Assembly: GCA_977016875.1 (NCBI GenBank)
Contig: CDRNST010000006.1
Span: 6,758,001 to 6,822,000, forward strand
From: Pavona decussata
Lineage: Eukaryota
Direction of reading: 5' to 3'
DNA: 64,000 nt
Both the position numbers and the translations under genes were made by a program. Under the pieces are notes generated by a model. That model did not search any database. It was given only the letters and a program-made list of their open reading frames with translations, and was not told where the DNA came from. Shown in pieces: positions 9,296 to 55,319 of this stretch. Numbering within the stretch: position 1 is the first letter of the stretch; each line of letters begins with the position of its first letter.

Positions 9296-11597
9296 GTGAA
9301 GTGGCAGCGGTGATAATTATTTATAACAAAATAGATTGTTAGAAGCATTAAAATTGTTTCAAACCTTGGATTAACTAAATGTTTTTGAAAGTGGTCTTCA
9401 ACTTGGTGTCGAAAGTATTGTTTGTTCTGGTTGTGCCTTGCTACGATTTGTGATTGGCTAAAGTAACTCGACCACTAATTCAACCAGTTATAAGGAAAAC
9501 CAAACTTGAAGCTATCGTGGCTTGCTCGCGCGCGTTTTCCCGCGCGTGGCTTAGTTACATGTGCTGTTTGTGTCTGTTGTGATTGGCCAGAGCGCATCGA
9601 TAACTTTAGTTTTGGTGCTGCATTACACTGTTGAAAACCACTGAACAGTAAGGACACCGCATTAGATTTCAACCCGCACACGACTGTTCCTCTTTTTCCG
9701 TAGGATATTAACTGTCAAATGTAAAGATCGTTTTACAAGTATAGTTTTCAGTTATAAGGAGTGGGTGATCAAAAAGGGAGTGGTGGAATCGGAGAAAACT
9801 GGAATAAAAAAAGGATACGGAAAGAATGGAAAGTTCCCCAAAATTCTGAATGTAAACCCCTCCGAAAATAACCCCAGCCCAAGAAGGGCCTCAAATCTCT
9901 ATTATCTTCCATGATAAACCCAACAGACCAGAATTGAGACCATGGACTTTATTAGCTTTTTGTTTTGGGCTGTTAGTTCGTGTTTGACGCTAATTTAAAT
10001 TCTTCTCATTGTCAAGCCGGAAAATGCTCTCCAATATTAAGCGCCCCGCCAACAAGCCAAACGTGAACGAGAGTCCTTTCAACGAATAAAGACCAGGGCT
10101 CATATTGAGAATTTTACGATGGTTGCGGAAACAACTTTTGGTCCTTAAATTTGAACATAAAAAATTTGTGTTGATTTTAGTGAGGAGTTAGGGCGCTGTT
10201 GGTCCTTCCTTAGATACGCCACTGGCCAGTTCTATATGAGGGACATTTCACAAGTAACAATTCTGTGATAAATAATATTCATTTGACTGTTGTCCGGTAG
10301 AAACAAGTTTTCATTCGTCACTCGTATTTTCCAATCTTTTTCTTTCTTTCTTTTTATCACTCTTTTTCGTTCCACTCAACATGATCGATTTCACACGATC
10401 TGAGAAGATTAACAAAATCTTTATTAATGTATTACTGAGAGACTACATAATTTCGTATCTTTATCATCTACGGATCACAGTTTGTTCTAAATCAAGTTCG
10501 GGGTGAAATGCTGCGACCCCGTTTAACACGCTGTTACATCTGTGAACGCATCAGAGATGAGCTCCCAACCACCACTGGGTGGTAGGTTGACTTCCCTGTG
10601 TGCAGCGGAACTTTGGGTTGATGTATTCATAGTAGCCAAAGCTGTCTTCCCAACTCACTGAACCCGCCTTTGGCCTAAACTGACAGGTAGCGTATGTACT
10701 GTCAGTATGCAGGAAGTAGCCGTTAGCACCCTGCCAAAAAGGTACCGTTTGGTGGATCCCGATGTGTCCGCGGATGTTGATGTATTCAACTTTCTTGCAT
10801 TTGTTGTTGTCAAGGTAATCGATGACGTTGAAGTCCTTGAAGCTTCCACGAACGTAATCTCTGAAATCGACGCCGTGGGTCGGGTAGCTGCATGTTGCTC
10901 GCCAGTGAGTGGAGTGACTCTGTAGGGACTTCATTCGTGCCAAACTCAGGCGGTACAGATTCCAGTTCTGTGCGTTCTCGTTCACTGGAGAGTTGTACTT
11001 GAAAGGAATCTTTTGAAAAGCGGGCATGTTACGATTTAGAGTACTCCAGGATATGATTAGGTTCCAGGCAGTGCCAGGCTCGGACTTGAGATCACAGTAA
11101 GCCGGGTAACTGTTTCCGCCATTATCGCAAAGCCTGTAGACACCACATTTTGAGGCTCCTCTCAGCAGATAATCAAGGCAGGAGGTTGGACGGAAGAGTT
11201 TTCGTTCATTTTAGTTGATTTAGGACAATCGTCTCCCTAGAAAAAACAAAACAAAACAAAACAAAAACAAAACAAAGAATTAAAATCGTTGACCTTTTTG
11301 GCACGAAAAATATCGCAATATTGTCCACGACTCCAGTAATGTACAGATCAGTTCAAACATTGGCATTGTGAGGAGCGAATTCAGGGACCAGCGTGGTCGA
11401 CCGGATTTTCTTGTTGCAATTGATCTGATTTTAATCTTTCCCGGTTTCAAGATAGTTTGAAATCCTGATCGTATTTTTATTTATTTATTTTTTTTACTAA
11501 AATATCTTAAAAAGCGACTGCAATTACAAAAATAGATAGACTTGGGAGCTTTTACTCGGCAAGAAAACCTCGAAACTTAAATATCTGTGTGAATTAA

Positions 11598-12205
11598 GAG
11601 TGGCCGTCTGTAATTTTCAACTAATGTGTTTTGGGTGCGAAAAAATAAAATTCGTCAAACTTTCTCAGAAGAAAGGACTAGATAAGTAATTCACATTTAT
11701 GTAACTTTCAGGTCAATCAAATAAATATTTTAGCTGCAGGACTAATATTTCGGTTTTTCAGCTCTCAGAAAGCACTCAGAGCTCCGTCAGAGCTACTTCC
11801 TACATATCGGTAACACCTGGGTTTGGATATAAAACGTAACTAAAACTAAACGCCAAGTTGGAACTCGAAATCAGAAGATATTAATGATTAATTCAGGACG
11901 GTTATTTCCAATTGTAATAAAAAGCTGAATATTTTACCGATTTTTTAACTTTTCTCTTTTGTGAGCCATTTCGGCAGGTACAAAAATCGGCTAAATTCAA
12001 ATGAAAATATCGCCAATGGTACATTACTAGACTTCATAAAAGTACACCCCAGTTAAAGAGCAACGTCTTCCCTTCAAATGTTTGCAATAAAATTTTGGGG
12101 CCAACGTAACTACGAAATTTGACAGTTGAAATTACAAAGTGCCCTTTTGTAAACAAACGCAATCTTTAATTAGCTCAACAACGACGAGTCAATGCCATAC
12201 GAAGG
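11598..12205 (+). repeat. Left terminal inverted repeat (~600 bp)
   Basis: Aligns by eye with the reverse complement of 18555-19607 once the solo LTR 18623-19069 is removed. Imperfect, with scattered mismatches. Confidence 0.9.
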
Positions 12206-12670
12206 CGCTTTACTTTAGCGCTAAACTAGCTAAGGATGCTTTTTACAAGATCAACTGTTATAAATGTGCGCCAGACTCGGAAGGAAGTTGAATAACAATA
12301 CTGTACAATTAAATGAGTGATTTATCATTCAGAAGCGGACATATCACAAATGTCTCGCAAAAGGTAGATAGCATGCTGCTCTTCCCAAAAGGCTGAAAAG
12401 GAGACAATAAAATTTGCATACATTATTTCACCAATTATCGAATGAAAAAATGAATTTGATTCGGAATCGTTTCCAGATGGATATGACCTGAAAGTTATCT
12501 TATGGCTCTTTTAAAATGATCGAATTGCTAATGATTCGAATTTGACAACTGTTCACAGAATCCCAAGAAAAACCACCGTAAATCATTTTTTCCGAAGAAC
12601 AACCATTGTTTTACTTTCACTCGACCCTACAAATAAATTCGTGAACAATTCAACATGAATTGAAACTTGT

Positions 12671-13710
12671 TCACTTTAATGTTTGTAGGGCCATATCGTA
12701 CACCGTCGCTTGTCCCTCTGGTTGGGAATCCCGACATTTTAAAAGATTCCAAAGGCTCTGACGATATCTTTCATTCAGAAGAAAATAAATGCATGGATTA
12801 AGCGATGCGTTGGAGTAAAATATGAACTTGACTGCAAAGTTTAAATGGTCTATTCCACAAGGAATTTTTTCGTGCCACCAAAAAAGGTGTAACAATCCAG
12901 TGATATCTATAGGAAGTATACACATAACAAATAAAACTATGATGGCCAGAATTTTCTTAATGATCTTAGTGTCTTCTTTTCGCCTTTGTCTTCTGAATGA
13001 GGACACTGTTTTCCAAAATGATCTCTGTTTTATTATAGACCTGAACATAAAACCGTAATGACTGCCAAGGGGATGGCAATTAAGATAACTGATATCGCCA
13101 CGAAGTAGATTCTTTGAGCTTTTAGACTGTCAAACGCGGGTTCCCAGCTGAAGATGCAGTATCGTATGTTATTGACTTGTTTGAGACGCACTGTGTTAAG
13201 GTAAGTGCTGTGTAGACCCATAGATACTAACCATATTAGTGGAATAAGGACTCGTCTCCGTCTTGGTGTTATGACGGGGTCTCGATATGGCTGAACCACT
13301 CCAGCATACCCATCTACAGTGATGAGCAAGATACTTTGAATCGATACAGCGGTGGAAATGTCTTGGAAGAAATAAACAAGTTTGCATAGAATGACTCCAG
13401 CAGCCTCGTCAATCAGCCATCTTTGCACGCCGGTGAAGATTTGCGTGAGCTCTCGCGGAACGGCGAATGCCGATACCATTAAATCTGAGATGGTCATATT
13501 TGCGATTAGCAAGTTGGTACTTGTTTGCATATGTTTGTATCTGGCAACGATGGCGATGAGTGCAGAATTTCCGACCAGTGAAATCAGCATAATGATAGAG
13601 TAACAAGCTGCTTTGACCACTTTTATATCCATAGGCTCTTCTTTTGTGAATGGCATGCATTTAACTCCAGTTGAGTCTGGGTTCGTTGAATTGTCAAGCG
13701 AATCATCCAT
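12671..13710 (-). pseudogene. Class A GPCR, neuropeptide-receptor-like (RFamide/QRFP/NPFF-type), frameshifted
   Basis: ORF 13033-13710 has TM1-5 (GN, NLLIANMTISD, CKLV, DRY altered to DGY). ORF 12671-13048 has TM6-7 (FVMCILP, NASLNPCIY). A frameshift near 13045 separates them. Confidence 0.88.
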
Positions 13711-14283
13711 GGTACTACTCCAACAGCATTAAACGGAGCTATCGAGTTGACTTTCCTAGAACTGAAATAAAGAAAATGTTGTTTAACGAGAAGCATGCAA
13801 GTCTGTGTATTAAGAAATCTTTCAAAAACTCATTAATAATTCGTAAGCCCATTGACCAAATGGTCGATAAAACGTCACGTGCAGTGGTTTTAAAACCCGA
13901 TAAAACCTCCTCCTTATTAGTATGGTTTTTCTCGTATGCTATTATTACACAATGTCTTATTGTCTAGTTAACGATCACTCAGCTTTTTTATTCATTAACA
14001 AGCCGACATGAATGAATTGCAAGCACACCATACTGGATGAACAAATTAGCACGTACTTAGCTATAATTGGATTATAGTCCTTTTACAGAAGACCACAATA
14101 GTTAAAAACGAACAACAATAAAAGAGATGCCAAAAGCTGGTCTGCGAATACATGTATTCAAAAGTAAATTGTTTTCACAACAAGTTTCCAGCATTGTCAG
14201 CGTCCTTCTAAAATCTAAACGAACCCAGAGTCGGTAAGCTTCGCTCTCGTTACACTCAACTATTCGGCTCGTTGTTGCTACAG

Positions 14284-15126
14284 CTAGGCCTGTTTGTTCA
14301 GTTGTAAACCTTCTGTGGTAGATGCCCAAACGATTTCCGCTTTCACACCAGTCCATCCATTTACTGTTATTATTATGATGGAAACTAAAAAGGGAACATA
14401 ACAAACAACCAATGCCAACTGCACCCACGCTATGCTAGAAACCGTCTTCTCGTATTTTCCGATATTCTGTGGGGTCATTCCTTGCTGATTTTGGCGGTCT
14501 TGCACCTTAGCTTGGTGTTGCTGTAATGTGAGGATTATCTTCGTGTAACAGAATATTGAGATAGATAAAAGGACGACTGAAAACACAACTGCTGTTGCGA
14601 AGATGATAGGTAACAAATTGATCCAGAAGAAGTAAATAAATCCAACTGATATCCCAGCTAGCCAAATACAAACAGTGAGTGCACGAGTTCGCTTCAGTGT
14701 TACGACGTTTTTGTATCTGAGTCCCAATTTCAGGGCGAGAAGCCTGTCAACACTGATGGCAGTCGAGGTCACAACTGACGTTCCGCAAAGAACAAAACTT
14801 GAACCATTATTTATTTGAATAATCTGTTGAATGAAGTTGAAGTTGATCTTTATGCCGCCAGCATTCAGCAGGAGGATGACAGAGAACGGTTGTGATACGA
14901 GACCAATAAAAAGATCAGTTGCTGCGAGGCATGGAAGTAACAGTTTTGTTGGTGGATGAATAGCAGATGCTTTGTGAAGAGCAATAAGGATCAAGCCATT
15001 ACCCAGAGACGCAATGATGGAAAGAAAAACGTTCAAAGTAGCGTAAGATACAGCTACTATTGCTGGAATTATGTTTGCCTGTCTCAGCGTGTTCGTAAAG
15101 TTCCTATTTTCAGTCCAGTTCGCCAT
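14284..15126 (-). pseudogene. Class A GPCR, cnidarian adenosine/melanocortin-receptor-like type, truncated before TM7
   Basis: MANWTENRNFT..., LGNGLILIAL, LAATDLFIGLVSQP, AISVDRLLAL, LVVCYVPF. Homology stops at ~14315 (WASTT) and there is no NPxxY. Confidence 0.85.
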
Positions 15127-15630
15127 TTTTGGCTGTTTCCTAAACGGCTTCAAATCAGAAAACGCAGTTCCTTCACTGAGAAACGAACTGGATTTTAATG
15201 AGACCAGTCGTTCTTTAATTTTTTGTTAGATGTAGTGTCCTTCAGGTTACAAGCCAGCTTTCGAGGTGACTACACTGCCAAAACAAAGTTTCACCTGCGT
15301 ACTTTCTTAAATATACCCATTTTAACCTGTCAGCTGTTTCAACAGCGCGTCTGTGAGTCTGTAGGTTATCGCAATTAAAATGTGGGCATTCATTGGGCAC
15401 AGTTTGGCAGTATTTATGTAGCCACATTACGTTTTTTTCAATTGGCAACATTCACGCGGTCATAAATTAAAAAATTCTAAATATACGTAAACAGCAATAA
15501 TTTTTTCAGCGAGATTGTTGTTGTTATTTAACACTCCAAAATATTTCCACCCTTCGGCTCTGGTAGTTCGTCCGGCAAGAAGAGCGCTGCGACTCAAATA
15601 ACAGCTGCATTCGCCATTTTTTAGTGCCGC

Positions 15631-15820
15631 AATAGGCCCTTTTCATGATGACGTCATTTGACTACAATTACCAGAATTCATTTCGTTTTCCTTTTCAAAT
15701 TCAAATTTTGTAATCCCTGTGGACAGCAAAGCACAATGGCTCTAATTAGCACGAGAAAACAAAAACCTGAAGGATTCTGGTAGTTGTAGTCAAATGACGC
15801 CATAGTGAAAATGTCCTATT
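15631..15820. mobile_element. 190-bp MITE
   Basis: TIRs AATAGGCCCTTTTCATGATGACGTCATTTGACTACAA / TTGTAGTCAAATGACGCCATAGTGAAAATGTCCTATT. A second family member lies at 50013-50202. Confidence 0.85.
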
Positions 15821-15822
15821 GT

Positions 15823-15887
15823 CAAACTCGTTCCCAGGGCCCTGTCTTTTCCTCCCTCGAAGAGAGAGGAACCTGGGAACAAGGTTG
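15823..15887. mobile_element. Short palindromic MITE
   Basis: CAAACTCGTTCCCAGG ... CCTGGGAACAAGGTTG inverted ends. Confidence 0.6.
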
Positions 15888-16997
15888 TGTTATTATTTTT
15901 ATTGGCATAAGATATTAGCAAGACCAGTTGCCCTTTTTAAAAAAGTGTAGCTAGCTTAAGAATAATGCGAACAACACGACAAACAGAAAACTGAAATAAA
16001 AGAAGCCGTCAGTCACAGCAAATTTACTTCCTCTCACCTCACAGAATGTGGTGTTAGTCGCGGGATAGCGCAGAGATACCAACAAATCTTTTGGAGATCT
16101 CTTCTCTTTCCCGCCTAAATTTTCTCTCGTCTTTCCCCCCACTTTCCCGGCAAATCGACCCATTTTCTGTGCTTTCTGTCTGAACGTTATAAGGGTCGGG
16201 GGAAAGATAGACAAAAGTGGATCTAGGAGCCGTACCATAAATTAGAAGAAACGAAATTTTGTGGATTTAAAGAAAAAGTGGATTTTATATGGGAGATTTC
16301 AGGGTGAGCAGTACCCTGGACCGGCAGATAATTTCCGTGTCGGTAGACTCCCGGATAATCCGAGACCGTCGACATATATGATAACGGCAACAGATTAGTT
16401 GAGGATAAGTTCGTCTCACGGATTTGTCAGCCTCAGTAATGTCTAATATGAATCAGGGACTACCACCGTTCATTTTTCGATGGATATCTGTTCGGATGGC
16501 CTTTATCGGCTAAAAAAATTGGAATTATTCGTAAAGGAAATCTACAGTTTATTTGCCAAAATGTGAAATCAAAATTTCGTAACACTTTGAACAAAACTAA
16601 TTCCTTTCGTTTTCAAAGGGGAAAGTATGTCTTTAAAAATGCGAAAAAAAAAAAAAAAAGGGGGGGGGGGGGGGAGGCAACTAACTAGCATTTTTGTATA
16701 GCCATTTTTGTATAGCGAACAACAAGTTGTATATTCGAGGACATAGAACTTTCTGCAACTTACATTTTCAGCTAAAGGATCCGAACAGAAACAAACGTGT
16801 CCTTAAAAGGGTATAAAACGATCTGGGAACAAAGGAGACAACAATTTAAGTATTTTGCTTAAATGTTCTCGTTCTCGTTCATTTCTTACGCATACTTCGT
16901 GTAAATTTACAAAGAAAACATCCTTCAGTTCGATTATTAAAAGCCTGATAAAGTAGTTTATGTAAAAAGATTACGAAGATTGAGTTACTGACAGTTA

Positions 16998-17850
16998 GGC
17001 CCGTTTCATACGTCGAACTTTACATTAGCCGAACTTAATACCTATTAAGGTCGACCAAAATAATTAAGTTCGGCAGTTGATTCAGACGTCGAACCTAACT
17101 GAAGTCGAACTTAAAGCTAAAGTGAGAAAGTAGATTTTCGTGGTCAGCGGCTGTTGTTTTTTTCTCAACAAGATTCAAAATGGCGGGAAAGATGAATTCT
17201 GACATGGAAGAGCTTGTTTGGTAAAATGGCATTGGGGGTGGTCAATTGTTTATTTTAGTATTAGTTGTTATTGATATTTCTTATAATTCTTTATAGTTAT
17301 TATATTTAAAATTTTTAAATTCACGTAAAGCGCTTTTGATCATTTTAATGTTAAAAGGCACTATATTAAGTGAATAAATGTTGTTTTTGAAGATTTGTTC
17401 GGAGAAATCTTGACGCTTTGCCTTTGATATAGCCTGTATTGGAAAGTTTCTGTCGGTTTGAAGTGCGTGTGCACATCAAGAATAGATTCTTTTCTTTTTT
17501 TTTAATCTTTCGCATCTCAGACAAGTATATTTAGTTGTTTCTAAACAAGAAGAACAAGCGCATTCCTCTTTTCCCGCCATCTTGTTCAGGATGAAGTCCT
17601 TTGTGCATGTCAAGTCAATGGAACGCGCAGACCTCTGGGATAGATATAATTTATATAATTTATACGTAACGTATGCATTTGATTCGGCACACGTAAATGT
17701 TCGACGTATGAATCGAAGTCGAACTTAAGAACGGCGGGTCGACCCAAATACAAATCTGTCGATCCTAACTGATTCATACGTCGATCTTTACTTGCGCCAA
17801 ACCAAATAATTAGGCTCGGCCCATGTAAAGTTCAACGTATGAACCGGGCC
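16998..17850. mobile_element. PIF/Harbinger-like MITE
   Basis: GGCCCGTTTCATACGTCGAACTTTACAT ... ATGTAAAGTTCAACGTATGAACCGGGCC, flanked by TTA / TCA. Many internal GTCGAAC repeats. Confidence 0.7.
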
Positions 17851-18242
17851 TCAGACGCCGAACTTTTCATGAGCCGAACCTAATACCTCGAATTAAGTAC
17901 ATGAAAAGTTCGGCGTCTGAATCAGTTGAAAACGGCTGTTTCAATTTGGAACGACCCAGCCGTTCTTCCCGCCTGGCTCAGCCGGGAATTTTGGCTTTGG
18001 AACGGCTTTGATTCAGACGCCGAACTTTTCATGAGCTGAACCTAATGCATAAATTATTATAACGTATTTCAAATAAAAAAGATAAAAAAAAAAAAAAAAC
18101 GCTGACCTTTCGATTGGTTTTGCTTCAAGTAAATTAAGTTCGGCTAATTAAGTTCGGCGTCTGAATCAAAAGGCGGGATTTTCGTGATTTAGGCCGACCT
18201 TAATTTGAATTAAGTTCGGCTGATGAAAATTTCGGCGTCTGA
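17851..18242. mobile_element. Related palindromic MITE abutting the previous one
   Basis: TCAGACGCCGAACTTTTCATGAGCCGAAC ... GTTCGGCTGATGAAAATTTCGGCGTCTGA, with internal copies of the same motif. Confidence 0.65.
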
Positions 18243-18554
18243 GCGTTTCACAGTTCCTCACCATCTGGCCTTAAAAGTACCATCCACTGCAAAGGTAAGT
18301 TTCTTGTAGATAGCCTTTGGCTCACGTATGGAATAGAAGTCGAAAATTTTTCCATTTAAATTGTTGTTGAAGCGCGGAATTTGCTTATCAGTGTGACAAT
18401 TAAACAATACTTTTTCAAAACTTGTCTTGTTTCTTTCAAAATTCGCGGATGATTAATCCAAAATATGTTTTTAATCCACAAAAAATATAACAGGAAGCAA
18501 AATATTTTGTTCACTTCGGGTATTTCATGACACGAGGGGATTTTAGATTGTTAT

Positions 18555-19607
18555 CCTCGGTATGTCATTAACCTGTCGTCGTTGAGCTATTTGAAAATTT
18601 AGTGTTTGTTTTCAAAAGTGCATATAGGCGAATAATCCAAGGATGGCCCACGGTTCCAACTCGTCTTTATTACAGTTAATACGAATTACGATTACGATTG
18701 CTAAAAGCGAAACAAAATACAAATTACTAAGGAATACAAATGATGGTTATGAAACGACGAAAATACAGGAAACGGAAAGAAACTAAGCGAAAATACTTAC
18801 AAACGTTGTGTGACTTGAAAGTTGAACGGAAAAAATGTACGATGGCTAACAAGACTGGACGAAAGAAACTGCAACGATGTTGCCGCGAACGCTGAAGCGA
18901 AATGAATTAGAATAAACGATGAAACTTACAAAATGATCTAAGAACAAAGAAAATTATGCAGAGAAATCTAACAGAATGAACAGCGATAACTGAAAAGAAT
19001 GTGAAAGGAATGTGCAACCATACAAAGAACTAAATGCTAAACATATTGACGTGGAATGCGGCCGTAACAGTGCACTTTGTAATTTCAACTGTCAATTTTC
19101 GTAGGTACGTTGGCCCCAAAATTTATTGCAAATATTTGAAGGGAAGACGTTGCTCTTTAACTGGGGTGTACTTTTATGAAATCTAGTAACGTACCATTGG
19201 CGATATTTTCATTTGAATTTAGCGGATTTTTGTACCTAACAAAATGGCTCACAAAAGAGACAAGTTAAAAAATCGATAAAATATTCAGCTTTTTATTACA
19301 ATTGGAAATAACCGTCCTGAATTAATCTTAAATGTCATCTGATTTCGAGTTCTACCTTGTCGTTTAGTTTTAGTTACGTTTCATTTCCAAACCCAGGTGT
19401 TACCGATCTGTAGTAAAATGATCCCTGAGTTCCTGCCGAGAGGTGAACAACCAAATTATTTGTCCTACAGCTAAAATATTTATTTGATTCACCCAAAAGT
19501 TATATCAATGTAAATCACTTACCTAGTCCTTTGTTTTGAGAAAGTTTGAGGAATTTTATTTTTTCTCACCCAAAACACATTAGTTTGAAAATTACAGACG
19601 GCCACTC
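18555..19607 (-). repeat. Right terminal inverted repeat, interrupted by a solo LTR
   Basis: Reverse complement of 11598-12205. The match resumes on both sides of 18623-19069. Confidence 0.88.
18623..19069 (-). mobile_element. Solo LTR (447 bp) with 5-bp TSD
   Basis: GTGCA is duplicated at 18618-18622 and 19070-19074. The minus strand starts TGTTACGGCCGCATTC and has AATAAA near its 3' end; the terminal CA appears mutated to TA. Removing it restores the TIR. Confidence 0.75.
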
Positions 19608-22600
19608 TTAATTATTTTCAGTATTTTACCTTGCATCCCAGTGTAAGAACTCTTTTGTGCCGTCTGTGCTCAGCAACTGCTGCAAGTGCCTAGAAGATGA
19701 AGAAAGATTTGAAAATTAGACGGTTGAAGAGTGGAGATCATATTCTTGTAGACAAAATATGTCACGGGCCGGATTTTGTCCATCGAATAACTGCGATCCT
19801 GAGATTCCTGTGGTTTCGTAAACGGTTTGAGTAGTTATAATAATTATATTTCTTGGACATGTGGCCTTACTAACTTTCTATCGCAGACAAAACACTTACG
19901 AAAAGAGTGATGCCAATAAAAGCCGCGATTATCTTAAATGTCATCTTTAGTTTTCCTCGAAATACCGTTTTGAATTTAGTTCGAAGAAAGAAAAAGGGTT
20001 TGGAAACCGCTTCTGCTGACCGCAAGTATCTCCTCAACAAGCGAGCAGTCCAGGCTGTTATTTTACGTAGAACCAAAACATATCAGATAAATAAATTGAA
20101 AACACGGGAACGTGTTCCCCTGAACATGTTTTGTGGATTAGACAAAGGAAGCAAAATTTTTTTACTGTGACAACTTGATGTCAACATGTTTGCCATTTTC
20201 ATTTTTCTTACATGGTTCGTTTGTAGAGCAGTGCACGGCAAGCAAGCTGTGAAGTCTGGGATCATTCATTTATCCAAGAGACAACTCTAAAAGTTATTTT
20301 TGTTCTTGTTGACTGTTGTAGATAGCTTTCTCCTATTGATTTTGAGGTCTTTGTTTTGCGATGTAAAACTGAATGCATTATTTCTGAGTCGGAGCAAACA
20401 ATAAATTTAGGTTGACAGTTCAGATGGATTCCTCAGTTTCTCTTCATACTGAGAGACATAGATTGCCCTCTTTTTCTGCTCCGCAGCAGAAACGAAACCT
20501 CTGTCTTCAGTTTCAGGGTAGTTCCCATTACATAAGAAAAGAGATACGCTGCTACCAGTCGTATGTCCATATACTTACGATTCACCCGCTATAATTTGTC
20601 AAAGTCAATTTGGTGAGTTCTTGTACAGCCAGTCACTCTAAGGTTGTGAATGTTTACAGAATGAATTGTTTAGTTGTATATGTACACTGTACGTAATATT
20701 TACTATATATTCTAATTTTGGAAATTTTTTAGTAAAATTTTCAAATATTACAACTTACGATTCCACACCTCATTAAGATCATGCCGTATTTTTACATTTT
20801 TCATGTTGAGTTCAGTCAGTTGTTTGCGGAATCAGTCAGTTCGGATTGTTTACATTATATGTAACAAGTATTAATCAAGGATTAGTAAAGTGCGTTCGAT
20901 CTGTCTTATCTCTGCTAAAATTATAGGGTTCTTTATTGTTTTGAATAAGCCAGAAACTCGTTAGCAAAAGTGGAGTTCAGGAAGGAGGTTATCGAGAATT
21001 ACCATGAATGAAACTTTGTTCTGGTACAATGCAATAAACTCAGTCTGAATGTAGCAAAATTCCACACAATCAGTGATTTGAGGAATCAGCGTTCTGATTG
21101 TTTACATAAAACATAACAATTTCTTACCTGGGGACTTTTTGGCAGTAAAATTAAGGAATAAAGTAAGTCTGCATGCTGGAATATTGAGAACTGCGCTTGT
21201 GTTAAGTTTGTCCGAATCAACGAACCCACGAGCCCCATTCGCATGGGAGATGAACATGTATTTAGGAATACGACGCAAATTATTTCGGTGCGAATCAATT
21301 TTTTGCCGGGATATTCAAACTCTGTAAACAAAAGAAATTTTTGCCAAAAGCTTTGGCTGATCAAATTTAAGATTTCTAAGCTCTAAAAAAGTCTTAACAT
21401 CAACTTTAGAGTTTTCCTAATATTTCTCTAAATTGATGTAGCGTGGACCGTTATAGACGAATGCCCGATGGAAACCAAAAATCGCGAATGTCAGCTTTCC
21501 ACCAAACCTTTATTTCTAAGCTTTGATTAGAGAATCTTTTACCAAGTACCTTATAAATATTCTGGGTTTAAATATCTGAAATCATTCTTACAGGAACTAA
21601 TTGTCATCGGATTCATATACAAAGTCTGCATTTTGCGCCATATTTGCCAAAATGGCGTACAGGCAAAAAAGATTTCTTCTTCCCCTCTCAGGTGCATTTG
21701 GAATGCGAAAAGATCGCTGACCAATCCCACAAGCTTTTTTTAGGATTGGTAGGCAAGTCTGTAGCATTATGATACAGATGGATGACTGATAAAACGTTCG
21801 GTTGTTGAAGTCAATCGACTGTTTGCATGTTTTCGTGAGAAACTGTTCCCACTATTTAGTTCAGTTCAGTGCAAGCGATTCGCGAATCCATATTGTCAGA
21901 ATGCCTCACTTGTGTAATCAAAACATCCCTATCTTGTAAAACTCAACCGAGTTACACCTTCAAACACGAAATATATATCTAAAATACTTTTTTGTGAGCA
22001 CAAAGATGAGAAATGGTTATATGCATGAACACTAAATAAAGCGTGTCTTGTATGGTCACTGAATTTAAATGGCGATTTTATAATTACCTCATTATACGCC
22101 TCGCAGTCAACATTCGCCTATTCAATTCTCAAACATTCATGTCTGTGAAAGCCGACGTGTTTTTTGTTGTTGTTGTTGTTGAACAACATAATTTAGGCAC
22201 ATATTGTACGTAACATCGTTGTACGGAATTTCTAAGGCTAGGAAAGATTTGATCTTCCACGTTCATCTTAGGGCCTTAATATTATTTATCTTGTCATGAG
22301 AATTCTCCGAAGAAAATCAAACGCATGACCTTCCGCATACCAAGTTGGTAAAGTGGGTCAGGGAGTCGGTAGGAGATTTTAGCGATTACATGGAATGGCG
22401 ACACAGTGATTCAGCGACCGAGGGCACACAGTTGTTCCATATGATCGATAGCTTATTTTTATTATAACCGACAGAAAAACCAGGCTTAATGTTCTCGCTG
22501 CTTGTGTTCTGGACACTCGATGAAATTTCGAATTTACAAACACGCGTTTCAGGTCGCTCCTTCTAAGATGACTGAATTGGCATCACAAAACTGATAAAGC

Positions 22601-35890: not shown

Positions 35891-38800
35891 TGCCAGAGAA
35901 AGAGAAGTCCCACCAGTGTAGTGGTTGCCTGGAGTTTGATTGCCGTAAACAGTTGCTACAGTGTTCAGCCTGCCAGTCTGTTCGATATTGTTCTGAGCAT
36001 TGTCAAAAGGTTCATTGGCCAAAACATTAAGTGTTATGCAAAGCAATCAAAGAGCTCTCTGAGAGAGAATTTTCTAAAGAAAAGGGGTTAGGAGATGCAC
36101 AAGATAGAGATGTGTACAGTAGTCATACCACTCCCAGGCAACAGGAGCGCATAGTTAGGCTGGTGGGAAGGAAGTGTCTAGTGGATTGTTACCTGGAGGA
36201 TAAGCCTACAGACGTTTTATGGGACACAGGAGCCCAAGTATCAATTGTTTCAGAAGATTTCCTGCAGAGCCAACTACCAACAGTTCAAACAAGGGATATT
36301 AAACAATTACTTGGGACAGATGGGTCCATAAGTTTGCAAGCAGCAAATGGAACAGATATCCCTTACTGTGGGTGGGTAGAGATTGGTGTGAGGTTGACAA
36401 ATGGAAACGAGACAGAGATAAGGGTTCCATTTTTGGTAACAAAGGAGAACATTGAGCAGCCCGTCATTGGTTTTAATGTTATAGAGTTGATGGTCAGAAA
36501 CACTGAAGATAATGAAGATGATGTGTTGCTGGAACGGATGTTGAGAAGCTTCAAAGTGAGTAAAAGTGGTGACCTGCAAGCATTGATAAGCCTAATTCGT
36601 ACTACTAACTCTGGTGAACTCTGTCTAGTTAAATCCACAAAGAAGCCACACACTGTCCCTGCAGGAGAGACTGTTCACTTACCTTGCCGTGCTAATACTG
36701 GACCAATCCACCGTAAGACTCCTGTCATTTTTGAGCCAGACGAGTTGGCTACCTGGTCTTCGGGATTGGCAGTACATGAATCCCTTACCACCGTAAAGGA
36801 GGGCGATGCAACCATCTTCTCAGTCCCAGTGACCAACAACACAAACCATGACATCACTTTACCTGGAAGAGTTGTCCTGGGACGCCTTCATCTTGTCCGG
36901 TCAGTGACTCCTGTCGAAGTCAGGTTTAAACATCCTGAGACACCAACCCCATGTGCTGGATCGTTTTGTAAACAACATACATCTGCTGAGCAAATTGAGA
37001 GAAACTTGTCTTGGTTACCTGAAGTTGATTTGAGTGGATTATCAGCAGAACAAAAGGAGCATGCGAAACAGTTGTTGGTTGAAGAAGCAGATGTATTTGT
37101 GACAAGTGATGATGACGTCGGCTGCATTTCCGAGTTGGAGATGGATATCAGGTTGACTAGTGACCAACCAGTACAGAAGAACTACATTTCCATACCCCGT
37201 CCACTCTATCCCGAAGTTAAAGGTTACATTGAGGACTTGCTTAACCGTGGTTTCATTCGGAAGTCCAGATCTCCATTCTCAAGAAGTGTTGTCTGTGTTC
37301 GTGAAAAAGATGGTGAGATGAGGTTGTGAATAGATTACAGAGAATCGAATAAGAAAACAGTGCCAGATCGGCATCCCATCCCTCGGATCCAGGAAGCCTT
37401 AGATAGTCTCGGGGGCAAATCATGGTTCAGTGTTTTGGATCAGGGAAAAGCGTACCATCAGGGATTCATTGGAGAGAAAAGTCAACCGTTGACTGCGTTT
37501 GTTACGCCCTGGGGATTATACGAATGGGTGCGTATACCATTCGGACTCATGAATGCTCCAGCAAATTTTCAAAGATTTATGGAGAACTGTCTTGGGCAGC
37601 TGCGTGATGAGATATGCATCCCTTACTTGGACGATGTAATTGTATTCTCGGGAACATTTTCTGAACATATTGAGCATCTGCGTAAAGTTCTTCGTCGGTT
37701 GAAGAGTTATGGTGTGAAGCTTAAGCCCAGAAAGTGTAACTTGTTCAAGCGGGAAGTGTCCTTCCTTGGAAGAGTGATTTCTCAAGACGGGTATCGGATA
37801 GATCCGAAAGCTACAAATGCAGTGACTGCGATGAAGGATTTAAAGCCGCAAACAGTTGGAGAAGTTAGAAGAATTACGGGCCTACTTGGAGTTTACCGCC
37901 GTCACATCAAAAACTTTGCACAAACAGCAAAACCCATTTATGATCTCCTCAATCATGACCTACCAAAGAAAAAGAATACTAACCCAATCAGACAGAACCC
38001 AAGGCTGCGCAGTGGACAGTTACCATCTTCATCACCAGTAGAGTGGGGACCCAGTCAACAGTCAGCATTGGATGTCCTGATAGACAAAATAACTTCACCC
38101 CCTTTGCTGGCATATCCAGATTATGATGCACCTTTTATTGTACACACCGATGCGTCACAGGATGGCTTGGGGGCTGTCTTGTACCAAAAGCAGAATGGTA
38201 CTACCCGAGTAATTGCATATGCATCCAGGACTCTGACCCCATGTGAACAAAATTACCACATGCATTCTGGCAAGCTGGAATTTTTAGCCTTGAAATGGTC
38301 AGTGACAGAACAATTCAGGGACTATCTCTACTACGCTCCTGAATTTGTAGTATACACGGACAACAACCCCTTAACTTATGTGTTAACATCTGCCAAGCTA
38401 AACGCCACAGGATTGAGATGGGTCGGAGAGCTTGCTGACTTTAACTTCGAAATACGGTACCGACCAGGCAAGTTGAATGTTGATGCAGATAGTCTTTCCC
38501 GATTACCCAGTGACTTCAAGACCTACATGGACAGTTGTACTGAAAAGGTAACCCCTGAAAGCTTGCACGCCTCAGCCCAAGTGTTATCAAGTGGTGACAA
38601 TGTCTGGATTGCAGCACTGACTGATAAAGAAGAGGAGCTCCATGTTGACCCTCTGTCCCAAGCATCTGGTAACCAAGTAAGAGTGGTGGATTTAGTGAAA
38701 GCACAGAATGAAGACCCTTACATTGGGCGTGTCCTTAAATTGATCAAAGCAAAACACAAACCGACAGTTGCAGAAAAGCACTCAGAATCACCTTTGGTTC

Positions 38801-40631
38801 GTAAGTTACTGAATGAGTGGCATAAACTTCACGTGAACAGAAAGAGTGGAGTACTTTATCGTAACCAGCAGGTTGTTCTTCCACAGAAATTTCGTCGCAC
38901 CGTTTATCGCGAACTCCATGAAGAGATGGGCCACCTTGGTGTTGAGAGGGTACTAGCTCTAGCCCGTGAGAGATTTTATTGGCCACACATGAGGAGAGAC
39001 ATTGAAAACTTTATCCATCACACGTGCCGCTGCCTGAAACAAAGACGCCCAAATCTACCAACGAGAGAACCATTACAACCAATTCTAACAACCGCTCCTC
39101 TTCAGATGGTTTCTATCGACTTTGTACATCTCGAGCGAAGCTCAGGGGGCCATGAATATATCCTAGTTGTTGTTGACCATTTCAACAAATATGCACAAGC
39201 GTACCCGACGAGAAATAAAACTGCTGTTACTGCTGCAGACAAGATCTTCAATGATTTCATCCCACGCTTTGGTTTCCCAGAGAAACTCCACCACGATATG
39301 GGGGGCGAATTTGAGAACCGGTTGTTCAAAAGGCTGGAGGAACTCTCTGGAGTAATGCATTCGAGAACGACTCCGTACCGTCCACAGGGGAATGGTCTGG
39401 TGGAAAGAATGAACCGTACACTTCTCAGCATGCTGCGTACCCTACCGGAAACCCACAAGTCTTGCTGGAAGGACCATATTAACAAACTCATTCACGCATA
39501 TAACTGCACTGTTCACGAGTCAACCGGTTATTCTCCATTTTTCCTGTTATTTGGTCGCAGCCCTCGTCTGCCAATCGATGTAATCGTTGACCTCGAGGTG
39601 GAGACAGGAGCCAAATCACATGCTGAGTATGTTACCAAATGGAAATCTGCCATGCAAGAAGCTTACTCACTCGCATCACAATCTGCCAGGAAGAATGCCA
39701 TGAGGGGAAAAAAAATTATGACAAACGAGTGCGATCATCAGCACTGCAAGTGGGAGACCGTGTCCTTGTACGCAACCTTACTCCTCGTGGCGGGCCTGGC
39801 AAGCTCCGCGCTTTCTGGGAAGACCAAATCCATATAGTTGTTGCAAGAAAAGGGGAGGGAAGCCCGGTGTACGACGTGAGACCAGAATCAAGCCAACGAC
39901 CCACCCGCACTCTACATCGAAACCTCTTACTCCCTTGTGATTATTTACCAGGCAAACCCTGGGAGGACCTCCCTCCCGTAAAGAAGACGAAAACAGCAGC
40001 ACCCTATCATTGTGATGATGTCCAACCACTGGTACAAGAAGGGAACGAAAGTGACAGTGAAGATGAATTTCCAGACGTTTCATGCTTGAATCTTTCACCA
40101 GGACACGATGGAAATGACCGAACACAGATACAGCTAGAGTCTACAAGTAAAGACGAGCCAGAACCAGATTTCACGGATGTTCATTCTGGTGAGGTGTCAA
40201 GTGAAATGGGGCCGGAAGCTAACATTGCTGGTACTCCTGGCGAAGCACAGCTAACACGAGACTCTCAAGCAGTCGATGGAGAGAGGGACGAGCGAGAGGA
40301 TGTTAGCAAATCAGACCGACCTCAACGTCTTAGACAGGCACCTAAACGGTTTACTTATGACAGTCCTGGGGAACCAACTTATGTGCGACAGGTTAAGGTT
40401 GATCCATATGTAGGAATACAGCAGGGTGGGATACCAACACTGCCAACGCCCTACATACCTGAATTCCCAGTGAACCAGTACTGTACGTTGTCACCAGCCT
40501 GTAACTATATTTCTCCACCAGAACCGCCCATGTTTTGGAACATGAATATGATGATGCCTTGTATGCCCTATCCAATGGTACCACAGTTGCCACAATGGGG
40601 AGCACCTTATCAGTCATTTCAGTGCAGATGA
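35848..40631 (+). pseudogene. pol: Pol polyprotein (MYND finger, protease, RT, RNase H, integrase), disabled
   Basis: LWDTGAQVS protease; YLDD RT; DAS and YTDNNPL RNase H; HHCC plus DDE integrase. In-frame TAA at 36028-36030, TGA at 37327-37329 and a frameshift at the A-run ~39708-39715. Confidence 0.93.
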
Positions 40632-41166: not shown

Positions 41167-42068
41167 ATTGCATGAAAGAAATAATTTTTTCAGCTATAAA
41201 TAAACCCGGCATCAGACAGTGAAGTTTACCTCGCATCCCAGAGTAAGAACTCGTTTGTGCCGTCTGTGCTCAGCAACTGCTGCAAGTGCCTAGAAGAAGA
41301 TGAAAAACGATTTTAATCTTGGGCAGTTCAATAGTGATGATCATTTTCTTGTAGTTAAACTCAGTCACTGGATTTTGTCCATCGTATAACTGAGATCCTG
41401 AGATTCCTGTGATTTTGTAGGTATGAAAACGGTAAACGGCGTGAGTAATTATAATTATTTCTTGATCATGCGGCGTTACTTCCTCAAATAGGCCAAATAA
41501 AACGGTCATTTCCTTCCTTTACGCCTTAGTTCCATGCATCGCTCGCCGGTTTGAATCTCGTGCTCAATTTCAAAATGTTGAACTCGGTGATAATTTGGCA
41601 GATATAAAACTAAGAAGGATCGTTCCATTAATAGTTTTGTGTCACAAACAAATCACTCACGAGAAAAGAGATGCCAATAAAAGCCGCGATCGCCTTAAAT
41701 GTCATCGTTAGCTCTCCTTGAAATACCGTTTCGAATTTAGTTCAAAGAACAAAAAAAGGATTTGGAAGGTTCTTTGCTGACCAAAGATCTCGTCAACAAG
41801 CGAGCAGGCTAGGCTATGTGTTACAAATATGCTACGTATACCAAACTATGCTAAATAAATCGAAAACTTAACCTGTTTCGTGAAGACGAAGACAGCTGTG
41901 ACAATCAAATCTTTGTCTTTCTATTTTTTCTGTAAATTATTAGAAGTTTATTAACCCGTATTCAAGAGCTTCATACGCTAATATTAACAGATAATAGGGT
42001 AAAATAGTTGAGAAGTTACAAGTTGAATGCTAGGTTTACAAAAGGAAAGTCTATAGGTAATAACTTAA

Positions 42069-47689: not shown

Positions 47690-49156
47690 TCAGAGATGAG
47701 CTCCCAACCACCACTGGGTGGTAGATTGGCTTCCCTGTGTGCAGCGGAACTTTGGGTTGATGTAGTTATAGTAGCCAAAGTTGTCTTCATCTTTCACTGA
47801 ACCCGCCTTTGGCTTAAACTGACAGGTAGCGTATGTACTGTCAGTACGCAGAGACTGGACGTTAGCGGTCTGCCAAAAAGGTACCGTTTGGTGGATCCCG
47901 ATATGTCCGCGAATGTTGATGTATTCAACTTTTTTACATTTGTTGTTACCATTGTAATCCACAATGTTGAAGTCGTTGAAGTTTCCACGAAGGTAATCTC
48001 TGAAATCGACGCCGTGGGTCGGGTAGCTGCATGTTGCTCGCCAGTGAGTGGAGTGACTCTGTAGGGACTTCATTCGTGTCAAACTCAGGCGGTACAGATT
48101 CCAGTTCTGTGCGTTCTCGTTCACTGGAGAGTTGTACTTGAAAGGAATCTTGTGAAAAGCGGGAAGCTTACGATTTAGAGTACTCCAAGACATGACTAGG
48201 GTCCAGGCAGTGCCAGGCTCGGACTTGAGATCACAGTAAGCCGGGTAACTGTTTCCGCCATTGTCGTAAAGCCTGTATACGCCACATTTTGAGGCTCCTC
48301 TCAGCAGATAATCAAGGCAGGAGGTTGGACGGAAGAGTTTTCGCTCAATTTTAGTTAATTTAGGACAATCGTCTCCCTAGGAAAAAAAAAAACGAAAAAA
48401 AAAATTAAAATCGTTGACTTTTTTGGCGAAAAATATTTTATATCGCAATAATCTCCAGGACTCCAGTAATGTACATATTCAAAAATTTATTTATACATTC
48501 GATCATATATTTTGTAATCTTTTTAATAAAATATCTTTAAAAGCGACTGAACGAAACAACAGAAAATGAATAAACGTTTAACTTGGCAAATTTCAGGAAA
48601 AACACAAAAGTTAAACATCAGTGTATGAAGTATTTTACCTCGCATCCCAGTGTAACAACTCGTTTGTGCCGTTTGTGCTCAGCAGCTGCTGCAAGTGCCT
48701 GGAAGATGAAGAAAGATTTCAAACTTCGATAGTTTAATAGTAAAGATCATATTCTTGTACGTAAACTCAGTCACGGGATTTTGTCCATCGAATAACTGAG
48801 ATCCTGAGATTCCTGTGATTTTTTTGGGTTATTAATGGTAAAAAGCGTGAGCAATTAAATTATGTTTCTTGGTTATGCGAGGACCTTACTAAGCAAAACT
48901 ATAGACAAACATAAGCCCAATTTTTCTGCACTCTATAATCGTTATCAGTAACGTAAACATAGGCTAAATAACTGGCATTTTACGGGTTAGATCCATGCAT
49001 CGCTCGCCTGCTGAAACTTGATTTCCTTCCCAACTGCAAAATGTTGAACTCGGTGATAATTTTGCAGATATAGAACTAAATAAGGTCGTTCGATTAATAT
49101 AAAATGCTTACGAGAAAAGTGATGCCAATAAAAGCTGCGATTATCTTAAATGTCAT
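47690..49156 (-). CDS. Secreted fibrinogen-related-like domain protein, copy 4 (intact, 263 aa)
   Basis: Exons 49156-49112, 48698-48639 and 48376-47690 (45+60+687 nt). GT-AG introns, no stops, AATAAA at 47564-47559. Confidence 0.9.
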
Positions 49157-52680: not shown

Positions 52681-53745
52681 AAAGGCTGTTTTAAATGTAA
52701 GACGCAGTTGTATGCAGAAGCACAAGAACACAAGCAACCTGTTTGTAAATTGACCGATGTATCGCTGCATCGCCATCATTAAACTGGTATGAAGCAAGCA
52801 AGACCGGAATGGGAAACACACTGAACAGCGCCCTAGTGGTGTACCAACCTGTTAAATGTGACGAACAAAATATTGTCCTATGGTGCATGCGTTGTTCCTG
52901 TTGTCCCTTAGTCCTTTAGAAAGCGGGGAAAGTGGGGAGGGAGGGGGGGGGGGGGTATAGTTCTCAAATATAGGAAGTGGGTAATCCTAAAGGAAGTGAC
53001 GGAATCGGAGAAAACTGAGGAAAAGAACAAAAAGGAAACAATGAAAGTATCGCAAAGTACCCCTCCGAAAAAAACTCCACCCAAAGAAGGGCCCCAAATC
53101 TCTATTATCTTCGATGATAAACCTAACAGACTACAGCTGAACCCATGGACTGTTGAGGGTTTCTGTTAGGCTGTTATTTCGTGTTTGACGATAATTTATG
53201 TTCTTCGAGCCCAATCAATTCGAAATCCGCAAATCGACTTTCCAATATCAAGCGCCGCTTTCAGCCAACAAGCCTACACGAACCGAGACCCGTTCTGGTA
53301 TTGAAAATTTTACAAAGTGTGCGGAAAAAACTCTCGGTCCTTCAATATGAACACAAAAAGGTTATGTTGATGTTAGTGAGAAGTTAGGGCGCTGTAGGTC
53401 CTTCCTTAGACACGCTACTGGTCAGTTCTATATGAGGGACATTTCACAAGTACACAATTCTGTGATTAAAATAATTTTCATTTGGCAGTTGCCCGGTAGA
53501 AATAAGTTTTCATTCGTCACTCACATTATCCATATTTTTTTCTTTCCTTTGTTTTTTCACTGTTTTTTGTTTCACTAAACATGATCCATTTCAGACGCTC
53601 TGAGATGATTAGCAAAATCTTTACTAATGTATGACTGTCAGACTACATAATTTCGTTTCTTTATACGGATCACAGTTTGTTCTAAATCAAGTCCGGGGTG
53701 AAATGCTGTGACCCCGTTTAACACGCTGTTACATCTGTGAACGCA

Positions 53746-55319
53746 TCAGAGATGAGCTCCCAACCACCACTGGGTGGTAGATTGGCTTCCCTGTGTGCAG
53801 CGGAACTTTGGGTTGATGTATACATAGTGGCCAAAGTTGTCTTCCCCACTGACTGACCCCGACTTTGGCCTAAACTGACAGGTAGCGTATGTACTGTCAG
53901 TATGCAGGAAGTGGCTATTAGCAATCTGCCAAAAAGGTACCGTTTGGTGGATCCCGATGTGTCCGCGGATGTTAATGTATTCAACTTTCTTGCATTTGTT
54001 ACCACCAATATAATCGACAATGTTGAAGTCCTTGAAGCTTCCACGAACGTAATCTCTGAAATCGACGCCGTGGGTCGGGTAGCTGTATGTTGCTTGCCAG
54101 TGAGTGGAGTGACTCTGTAGGGACTTCATTCGTGCCAAACTCAGGTGGTACAGATTCCAGTTCTGTGCGTTCTCGTTCACTGGAGAGTTGTACTTGAAAG
54201 GAATCTTGTGAAAAGCGGGAAGCTTACGATTTAGAGTACTCCAGGAGGTGATTAGGGTCCAGGCGGTGCCAGGCTCGGACTTGAGATCACAGTAACCCGG
54301 GTAACTGTTTCCGCCATTGTCGTAATGTCTGTAGACGCCACATTTTGAGGCTCCTCTCAGCAGATAATCAAGGCAGGAGGTTGGACGAAAGAGTTTTCGC
54401 TCAACTTTAGTTGATTTAGGACAACCATCTCCCTAGAAAAAAAAAAGAGAAAAACAAAAAAAACAAAAAAACAAAAACAAACAAAGAATTAAAATCGTTG
54501 ACCTTTTTGGCACGAGAAATATCGCAATATTGTCCACGACTGCGGTAATGTACAGATCAGTTCAAACATTGACATTGTGAGGAGCGAGTTCAGGGATCAG
54601 CGTGGTTGACCGGATTTTGTTGTTGCAATTGCTCTGATTTTTAATCTTTCCCGGATTCAGGACAGTTTGATATCCCGATCGTATTTTTATTTATTTATTT
54701 TTTTTACAAAAATTTCTTAAAAACCGACTGCAATTACAAAAATAGATAGACTTGGGAGCTTTCACTCGGCAAGAAAACCTCGAAACTTAAACATCAGTGT
54801 GTGAAGTATTTTACCTTGCATCCCAGTGTAAGAACTCGTTTGTGCCGTCTGTGCTCAGCAGCTGCTGGAAGTGCCTAGAAGATGAAGAAAGATTTTAAAT
54901 TTAGACAGTTGAAGAGTGAAGAACATATTCTTTTAGATAAATCAGTCACGGGATTTTGTCCATCGAATAACTGAGATCCTGAGATTCCTGCGATTTTGTA
55001 GGTTAAAAAAGGTAAACGGCGTGAGTAATTATAATGTAATTTCAAATTTCTTGGTTATTCGGCGTTACTAAGCAAAACTATAGACGAGAGTATTAAGCCC
55101 TAAAATAGGCTAAATAAAACGGTCATTTCCTTCCTTTTCGGGTTACGTAGGTCCATGCATGGCTTGCCGGTTTGAATTTCGTTCCTAACATTTTAAGTTT
55201 GGTGATATTTTGCACGTTTAACACTGGGAAAGATCGTTATATGAATAGTTTTGTGTCGCAGACAAATCACTTACGAGAAAAGTGATGCCAATAAAAGCCG
55301 CGATTATCTTAAATCCCAT
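53746..55319 (-). CDS. Secreted fibrinogen-related-like domain protein, copy 5 (open frame, 263 aa)
   Basis: Exons 55319-55275, 54874-54815 and 54432-53746 with no stops. A conserved Cys is lost (RATC to QATY) and the polyA signal reads AGTAAA. Confidence 0.85.

Follow-up and report, generated by a model that had tools for sequence, protein, structure and literature searches.

The 64-kb window analysed here (64,000 nucleotides of the coral Pavona decussata; assembly GCA_977016875.1, contig CDRNST010000006.1, positions 6,758,001 to 6,822,000, forward strand) is eukaryotic DNA with a G+C content of about 40%, is free of N stretches and carries five copies of one type of secreted three-exon gene, all on the minus strand. 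By sequence profile and by predicted structure, these genes are shown to represent a cnidarian-specific, strongly diverged branch of the superfamily of fibrinogen-related domains (FReDs) and intelectins. Across corals and sea anemones, lineages which are hundreds of millions of years apart, about 75 to 80% of the codons were shown to be under strong purifying selection, with a ratio of non-synonymous to synonymous divergence (dN/dS, omega) of 0.1-0.2, and six hypervariable loop segments were shown to have an omega of about 1, with synonymous and non-synonymous change both raised about 5-fold. With moderate confidence, the family can be regarded as a germline repertoire of secreted FReD/intelectin-like proteins, the loops of which are neutral, change fast and are shuffled among copies. 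A previous, sequence-only reading of the window had proposed a diversified recognition family with loops resembling complementarity-determining regions (CDRs). This proposal can be retained in so far as hypervariable patches recur family-wide on a constrained scaffold; an omega above 1, however, is not supported.

The exons comprise 15, 20 and 228 codons in each of the five copies, and every junction has GT/AG borders in phase 0, which agrees with the tandem three-exon arrangement that had been described before. Exon 1 has the consensus M[AT]FKIIAAFI.I... and exon 2 the consensus ALAAAAEH[RK]RHKR...GC[KE]; read by eye, the two exons together look like a signal peptide with a dibasic site and a cysteine behind it, and full-length homologues begin with a matching signal-peptide-type start. 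Exon 3 ends with ...TTQWW(L/F)GAHL and lacks the canonical P-domain tail. Each gene is divided into a first exon for the putative signal peptide, a short second exon that completes it and adds the dibasic site and a linker cysteine, and a third, large exon, which encodes a globular domain with a length of about 210 residues. The proteins are probably secreted, possibly disulfide-linked, binding proteins of a lectin-like kind. Copy 4, whose intact exon 3 was used as the query of the sequence searches and as the sequence for the structure model, is arranged as follows:

47690-48376, minus strand: exon 3 of copy 4, 228 codons plus stop in an open frame behind an AG acceptor, encoding the linker and the entire predicted FReD/intelectin-like domain
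48639-48698, minus strand: exon 2 of copy 4, 20 codons (ALAAAAEHKRHKRVVTLGCE) for the putative signal-peptide end, the dibasic site and the linker cysteine, with AG/GT borders
49112-49156, minus strand: exon 1 of copy 4, 15 codons (MTFKIIAAFIGITFL) for the putative signal-peptide start

A lack of expression would have counted against the previous reading, but spliced contigs that fit the gene model were found in the sequencing run X1, the RNA label of which is guessed. Coverage in this run is confined to exons. In one X1 contig, exon 2 is spliced to exon 1 (48697|49111), whereby 413 bases with GT..AG ends are skipped at 0-1 mismatches. A second contig connects exons 3 and 2 (48375|48638); its mismatches of about 3% point to a close paralogue or allele as its source. 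Two metatranscriptome runs also cover exon 3, together with some intron. The gene model is thus confirmed by spliced contigs, and copy 4 or a near-identical copy is likely to be transcribed.

The relationship to fibrinogen-like proteins is nearly invisible to standard domain searches. Neither the open reading frames (ORFs) nor the full exon 3 of any window copy gave a match in Pfam, even at E-values up to 10, and of 40 family members, no more than 4 are recognised by the Fibrinogen_C profile PF00147 (best E 3.6e-7). A single-sequence search of the PDB yielded weak matches to FReDs and intelectins, which are restricted to residues 14-65. With a family profile, matches to FReD and intelectin chains span E 7e-7 to 0.02, the best of which are an intelectin-type lectin of the lamprey (E 7e-7) and Xenopus XEEL (E 2.5e-4). 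An alignment with 11 canonical FReDs of the same genome using hhalign reached a probability of 88.8% (E 2.5e-6) and placed residues 19-122 on positions 1-105, with Cys20 and Cys48 aligned to the cysteines of the FReD A subdomain; residues 123-228 had no detectable sequence similarity to the canonical FReDs. The series EDNFG...FRC...QWW in the C-terminal half pairs with the FReD series NDFST..DND..C..GGWW only in an insignificant alignment (i-E 390).

For the full domain, evidence comes from an AlphaFold2 model of copy 4 exon 3, which was built with the family alignment and has a mean predicted local distance difference test (pLDDT) score of 83 and a predicted template modelling (pTM) score of 0.84. 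All Foldseek matches of this model are FReDs or intelectins, with template modelling (TM) scores of 0.40-0.49. In VIA-align, the predicted fold matched XEEL with Z 10.7 (root mean square deviation 3.5, 186 residues), human intelectin-1 with Z 10.5 and the lamprey lectin with Z 10.0, and it matched ficolins with Z 9.2-9.7 and tachylectin 5A with Z 9.2. In a search that was independent of Foldseek, only chains of the FReD superfamily scored above Z 5 with the model: seven cluster representatives of this superfamily reached Z 7.3-10.2 over spans from residues 2-228 to 15-228, and the best chain of another fold, a procollagen C-propeptide, reached Z 4.7, with the remainder at 3.1 or below. Taken together, the silence of Pfam, the profile match over residues 19-122 and the exclusive fold matches to the FReD superfamily mean that the description as fibrinogen-like with a non-canonical C-terminal half was right; a fold unrelated to fibrinogen or lectin domains, which the previous reading had named as a refutation, was not obtained.

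Intelectins (X-type lectins), which are represented by human intelectin-1, XEEL and the lamprey serum lectin, are nominally the closest solved relatives of the model, as they give the best structural match (183-195 aligned residues) as well as the best profile match in the PDB; in structure, they are tied with ficolins within 1 Z unit. Like the coral family, they are secreted; their N-terminal part resembles a FReD and their C-terminal half is remodelled, and cysteines before the domain could link subunits. However, the identity is only 12-14%, sequence similarity is restricted to the first 50 or so residues, and the intelectin domain of about 275 residues is some 65 residues longer than the coral domain. 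In intelectins, the ligand Ca2+ is held by conserved acidic residues and a histidine, and exocyclic 1,2-diols are recognised. The canonical FReDs that are covered by PF00147, such as ficolins, tachylectin 5A, FIBCD1 and angiopoietins, have the fold in common with the coral model (Z 8.6-9.7) and are likewise tandemly expanded in the genome, and the profile match to them takes in the A subdomain, the N-terminal half of the B subdomain and, within this stretch, the conserved cysteine pair. They differ from the coral family in that PF00147 misses the window copies, the TM scores are low and no counterpart to residues 123-228 is found by sequence. Lectins of the ficolin/tachylectin 5A type possess a Ca2+ site in the P subdomain and a pocket for acetyl groups.

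The sequence-only reading had listed the amino acid strings of five patches in copies 1 to 5 as well as four codon pairs (AGT TGG / ACA CAG / AAA GAT / AGT GGG), and each of these is exact. Among copies 2 to 5, 40 of the 196 compared amino acid columns are variable, 18 of which lie within the 31 patch codons. The variable sites are clustered: the dispersion of window counts is 1.38 for the four copies compared with 0.77 after permutation (P = 0.009), and clustering was also found (P = 0.0002) among the 21 intact paralogues of the C6 cluster, which are the sample of the selection analysis as well. Furthermore, differences at two or more codon positions were seen in 18 codons, 12 of which are inside patches, in line with the multi-base changes reported there. 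The notion of five discrete patches is borne out by this clustering, but more than half of the variable columns (22 of 40) are found elsewhere, some of which form a sixth cluster at residues 59-77. In copy 4, the variable segments are located as follows:

48146-48202, minus strand: sixth variable cluster, residues 59-77, notably 61-62, 67 and 75-77
47939-47956, minus strand: patch i, residues 141-146, DYNGNN
47846-47869, minus strand: patch ii, residues 170-177, TANVQSLR, in a turn between two predicted strands
47825-47839, minus strand: patch iii, residues 180-184
47774-47800, minus strand: patch iv and EDNFG, residues 193-196 variable and running into EDNFG at 197-201
47759-47773, minus strand: patch v, residues 202-206, YYNYI

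The most variable site is residue 204 in patch v, at which 8 different residues occur among the 21 copies, and patch ii exists in 14 amino acid haplotypes. In the EDNFG motif, E197, F200 and G201 are invariant throughout the family, and D198 and N199 are conserved in at least 90%. In the predicted structure, patch i is placed where a strand begins, patch ii in a hairpin turn and patches iii to v in a long coil (residues 178-218) around the invariant EDNFG. The columns that vary in 35 homologues from other genera of corals and anemones coincide with those of the window copies; the patch pattern is thus a property of the family as a whole. The near-invariance of the scaffold, which had also been described, holds at the protein level only. 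The omega of 0.24 outside the patches indicates that purifying selection on the protein keeps the scaffold, but synonymous divergence in the scaffold amounts to about 0.13-0.14 (at the widest 0.13-0.16) in the C6 cluster (L001-L023). This value is below the p-distance of 0.20 in the adjoining intron and 3' untranslated region, which fits a homogenisation of the conserved stretches from which the patches escape; constraint on synonymous sites could also account for it.

A search of the genome with exon 3 gave at least 139 matches. Around 29 loci are located on the contig studied here between 6.67 and 7.07 Mb (400 kb), all of them on the same strand, so that the family is indeed a tandem one; 21 of these have an intact full-length exon 3 and 7-8 are broken. 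In protein databases, 315 relatives were found, all of which are unnamed or 'uncharacterized'. The relatives with a named source are all from stony corals and sea anemones, that is, hexacorals (Porites, Montipora, Acropora, Stylophora, Oculina, Actinia and Actinostola), with 58-89% identity; the best match is a protein of Porites lobata, and about 60% identity is kept between corals and anemones. Good structural neighbours in the ESM Atlas (TM 0.70-0.87) belong to clusters with Cnidaria as the most commonly recorded phylum, some of which have EGF or PAN domains. A second subfamily with at least 45 matches is located on contigs C270 and C183 (L031-L061), in which an EGF-like module directly precedes the FReD-like domain within one exon. 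It is about 45% identical to the window copies, has variable loops of its own and shows strong gene conversion; analyses of this subfamily used 31 intact EGF-fused copies. Canonical fibrinogen domains (PF00147) are separate from the studied family and have at least 192 matches in the genome (e.g., on C288, C36, C243 and C89; L062-L073), also in large same-strand tandem arrays. In the paralogue L013 (C6:7024601-7025275), the stop after ...WWLGAHL is lost and the frame reads on (...WLGE...) to an open frame of 276 amino acids, which represents a variant C-terminus or else a copy in decay.

The family expands by tandem duplication and loses copies via frameshifts and transposon insertions, and paralogues swap segments through gene conversion. 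Large tandem expansion, birth-and-death turnover and exchange between paralogues are thus all found in the family. Recombination among the 21 paralogues is evident from the pairwise homoplasy index (PHI), which is 0.383 compared with 0.465 +/- 0.012 (P < 0.001). A single breakpoint gains 134 log-likelihood units, and the best model according to the corrected Akaike information criterion (AICc) has four breakpoints and lowers the AICc by about 296; breakpoints at 118, 174 and 196 are at or beside patches. Each patch has 7-15 amino acid haplotypes among the 21 copies, and neighbouring patches occur in more combinations than the tree-like minimum, e.g., in 14 for patches with 9 and 8 haplotypes. 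The patch variants are re-assorted among copies, and nearly every intact copy has a combination of its own (18 of 21 are distinct).

Pairwise comparison according to Nei and Gojobori gave a dS of 0.16, a dN of 0.063 and an omega of 0.39 for the whole exon. In the listed patches, the proportion of synonymous differences (pS) is 0.275, which is 2.2 times the scaffold value, and that of non-synonymous differences (pN) is 0.214, resulting in an omega of 0.74 with a bootstrap interval of 0.45-1.20. For columns that were picked as variable in other species only, omega is 1.01 (0.64-1.67). With respect to DIVERSIFYING selection, a dN/dS above 1 is not demonstrated; the behaviour of the hypervariable sites is neutral-like, with an overall rate that is raised several-fold or with a deeper history.

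That the patches are CDR-like recognition loops under positive selection, comparable to the peptide-binding region of the major histocompatibility complex or to snail FREPs, is considered unlikely, although standard codon models favour it. On a single tree, twice the log-likelihood difference (2dlnL) is 66 for M1a/M2a, 86 for M7/M8 and 65 for M8a/M8, with omega2 = 3.7 at 8% of sites, which corresponds to P-values around 1e-15 in the textbook use of these models; this signal was set aside because of the strong recombination. With five partition trees, M2a still has a 2dlnL of 27.3, with omega2 = 4.35 at 3% of sites (67, 75, 170 and 204), and eleven partitions of 20 codons give 13.7. Recombination on its own does not produce such values, as sets generated under M1a along eleven recombinant trees, when split into five partitions for the analysis, reached a 2dlnL of at most 7.0 in 7 replicates. 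In the second subfamily, successive partitionings leave a 2dlnL of 25.9, 16.8 and 8.8, and the sites that stand out belong to the same loops, in which selected sites recur (67/70/75, 170/172, 181/182 and 204/205); the patch columns of this subfamily have an omega of 1.34 (0.71-2.95) compared with 0.49 for the remainder. The sites selected there (REF 70, 99, 149, 172 and 182) are, however, not variable in the C6 cluster, where their omega is 0.17, so that the two subfamilies replicate each other at the level of loops only and not of sites. More importantly, when a neutral class with 2.9 times the rate of the constrained class was simulated on recombinant trees, 2dlnL values of 17-67 were obtained in six of six replicates, which encompass the observed 27. 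In a model with free class rates, the fastest class has an omega of 1.0 and 2dlnL is 0 for omega2 > 1 in both subfamilies; its fast class evolves 4.8-fold faster at 3% of sites in the C6 cluster and 6.6-fold faster at 13% of sites in the second subfamily. This null model has a better log-likelihood than M2a (-2867.1 compared with -2872.3 for C6; -3406.0 compared with -3421.1 for the second subfamily), and the test has power, since it detected selection in two of two sets simulated at omega2 = 4.35 (2dlnL 4.8 and 6.1). The signal that persists with finer partitions, although it shrinks from 66 to 27 and 13.7, is therefore no support for selection. In a site-wise test of synonymous (alpha) and non-synonymous (beta) rates resembling fixed effects likelihood (FEL), about 10 sites had a beta well above 1 with nominal P-values of 0.001-0.04, several of which are single changes with alpha = 0, and none of the 227 sites survived correction. 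Thus, the codon-site check of dN/dS does not support the diversifying selection that the sequence-only reading had assumed: M2a and M8 are significant, but neutral-fast simulations match their statistics, free class rates remove the omega above 1 and the interval of the patch omega includes 1. The combination of a neutral fast class of sites and gene conversion fully explains the signal of the textbook site models, which is a methodological warning.

Several points weigh against the neutral interpretation and its functional extension. The standard site models favour an omega above 1 also with recombination-aware partitions, and the non-synonymous divergence of the top sites (0.4-0.6) is above the 0.20 of the flanks; some selection in favour of diversity could be masked by the elevated synonymous rate. 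The codon models (GY94/F3x4) were self-written with relative branch lengths fixed, and the likelihood check against IQ-TREE concerned M0, the value of which (-3416.34) was reproduced. Moreover, the patch-bearing C-terminal half cannot be equated by sequence with a ligand site of any solved structure, and a functional role is deduced from the predicted fold and the pattern of variation. A second explanation, to which nearly an even chance is given, is that the patches are islands of divergence or a mutational hot spot: conversion would homogenise the scaffold, and the patches would escape or be swapped as small cassettes and would thus contain differences that are older or affect several bases, at synonymous as well as non-synonymous positions; selection in favour of diversity may or may not take part. 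It is consistent with the order of synonymous divergence from scaffold over flank to patches, the concentration of multi-position codon changes in patches, the adjacent breakpoints, patch haplotypes that are common to several copies in re-assorted form, and the fast classes at omega 1. However, a comparison with four copies from another contig, where a cluster of 71% identity is located, brought up no donors of patch variants apart from the family-consensus SVSSEDN, the patch pS of the second subfamily is not raised (0.075 compared with 0.108 elsewhere), and the low dS of the scaffold may instead reflect selection on synonymous sites. It is distinctly unlikely, finally, that the family has no role in recognition and that the proteins are secreted structural, matrix or venom-type components with unconstrained loops. 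FReD-containing venom proteins and matrix FReDs exist, and the loop omega of about 1, the short pro-region-like dibasic site following the signal peptide and the EGF or PAN domains of related cnidarian clusters, modules that matrix proteins typically have, would suit this idea. On the other hand, a variation that is confined to a few loops beside invariant motifs across lineages and the huge copy number are more typical of binding repertoires, and the nearest solved folds of the model are soluble lectins.

In the favoured interpretation of a secreted germline repertoire, the variable loops around the invariant EDNFG would set the ligand specificity. The repertoire would be diversified mainly by duplication, by the tolerance of the loops to change and by shuffling, and positive selection on point substitutions would not be needed. 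A more far-reaching idea, which is regarded as quite improbable, is that the loop patches are exchangeable cassettes and that short conversion tracts among more than 100 paralogues re-assort the six loops round the EDNFG core. In this case, selection would keep patch variants apart rather than act on point substitutions, and this would account for the elevated divergence of the patches at synonymous and non-synonymous positions alike, at an omega near 1. If true, the binding surfaces of a cnidarian would form a combinatorial repertoire in the germline and conceivably in somatic cells as well.

Large families of secreted lectin-type proteins with localised variation, for which gene conversion has been invoked, include the FREPs of Biomphalaria, the FREP/FBN proteins of mosquitoes and the coral tachylectin-2. 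As far as the portions of the literature covered here describe them, these families resemble the coral genes in size, in the localisation of variation and in gene conversion, and the family studied here is a further case of expanded invertebrate FReD-type lectin families. In contrast to such families, it has no IgSF domains and there is no evidence of somatic diversification, and positive selection is unsupported once variation in the synonymous rate is modelled. The Sp185/333 (SpTransformer) genes of sea urchins are likewise, in the portions of their literature covered, small clustered genes of the same orientation, which are mosaics of short elements in repeat-rich, unstable loci. The proteins, however, are unrelated, and the coral scaffold is folded, highly conserved and globular, with elements of loop size (5-8 codons). 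No papers were found for the locus names of the homologues, titles and abstracts on cnidarian intelectins contained nothing on the family, and the main text of a study on tandem duplications in Porites does not mention fibrinogen or intelectin. Families that are invisible to Pfam easily drop out of inventories of coral immune genes, and the placement in the FReD/intelectin superfamily provides a concrete and testable candidate for a secreted lectin repertoire of reef corals.

Besides copy 4 (47690-49156), copy 5 (53746-55319) is intact within the window. The region from the stop codon of copy 2 (position 10551) to the ATG of copy 5 (position 55319) contains the following further parts of the family, to which copy 1 is added:

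1-1365, minus strand: copy 1, with exon 1 at 1321-1365, exon 2 at 859-918 and exon 3 at 1-536, the latter truncated by the window start
10551-11236, minus strand: exon 3 of copy 2, with a 1-bp deletion near 11207 and a TAA within the match (L020)
19630-19944, minus strand: exons 1 (19900-19944) and 2 (19630-19689) of copy 2
31409-31999, minus strand: 3' piece of exon 3 of copy 3
32000-33566, minus strand: insertion of 1,567 bp in exon 3 of copy 3, with 14-bp terminal inverted repeats and the 10-bp direct duplication GTCTACAGAC at its flanks
33567-33672, minus strand: 5' piece of exon 3 of copy 3, which reads GDDCPK...KCGVYR
41230-41705, minus strand: exons 1 (41661-41705) and 2 (41230-41289) of copy 3, with a Gypsy-type retrotransposon before exon 3
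53746-54432, minus strand: exon 3 of copy 5, intact (L011)
54815-54874, minus strand: exon 2 of copy 5, with splice borders
55275-55319, minus strand: exon 1 of copy 5, with splice borders

Copy 1 is intact when it is read beyond the window in the genome (L021). In exon 3 of copy 2, the frame shifts after about 10 codons through the deletion near 11207, and the copy is probably a pseudogene, or the assembly contains an error at the deletion. Two of the four copies behind the original patch comparison, namely copies 2 and 3, are thus probably pseudogenes.

Several insertions interrupt the array. Intron 2 of copy 2 spans about 8.4 kb, and an insertion of about 8 kb (11598-19607) with two genes for G protein-coupled receptors (GPCRs) parts exons 1 and 2 from exon 3; the rhodopsin-type frames at 12671-13710 and 14284-15153 on the minus strand match Pfam 7tm_1 (E 1e-26 and 2e-21). 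A Gypsy-type long terminal repeat (LTR) retrotransposon is located on the plus strand at 34466-40631 in intron 2 of copy 3, opposite to the gene; its frames for gag, protease, reverse transcriptase-RNaseH-integrase and a downstream product are mostly open (473, 432, 825 and 330 amino acids). The insertion in exon 3 of copy 3 is a non-autonomous element with terminal inverted repeats of 14 bp (ATAGGCGTACGGGC). A duplicated acidic ORF of 211-220 amino acids with a poly-Q run, for which Pfam gave only a sub-threshold match to SIN1, is present on the plus strand at 8633-9295 and 29521-30156, with kindred DNA at 63427-63726, and sits in a spacer that is co-duplicated with the secreted gene.

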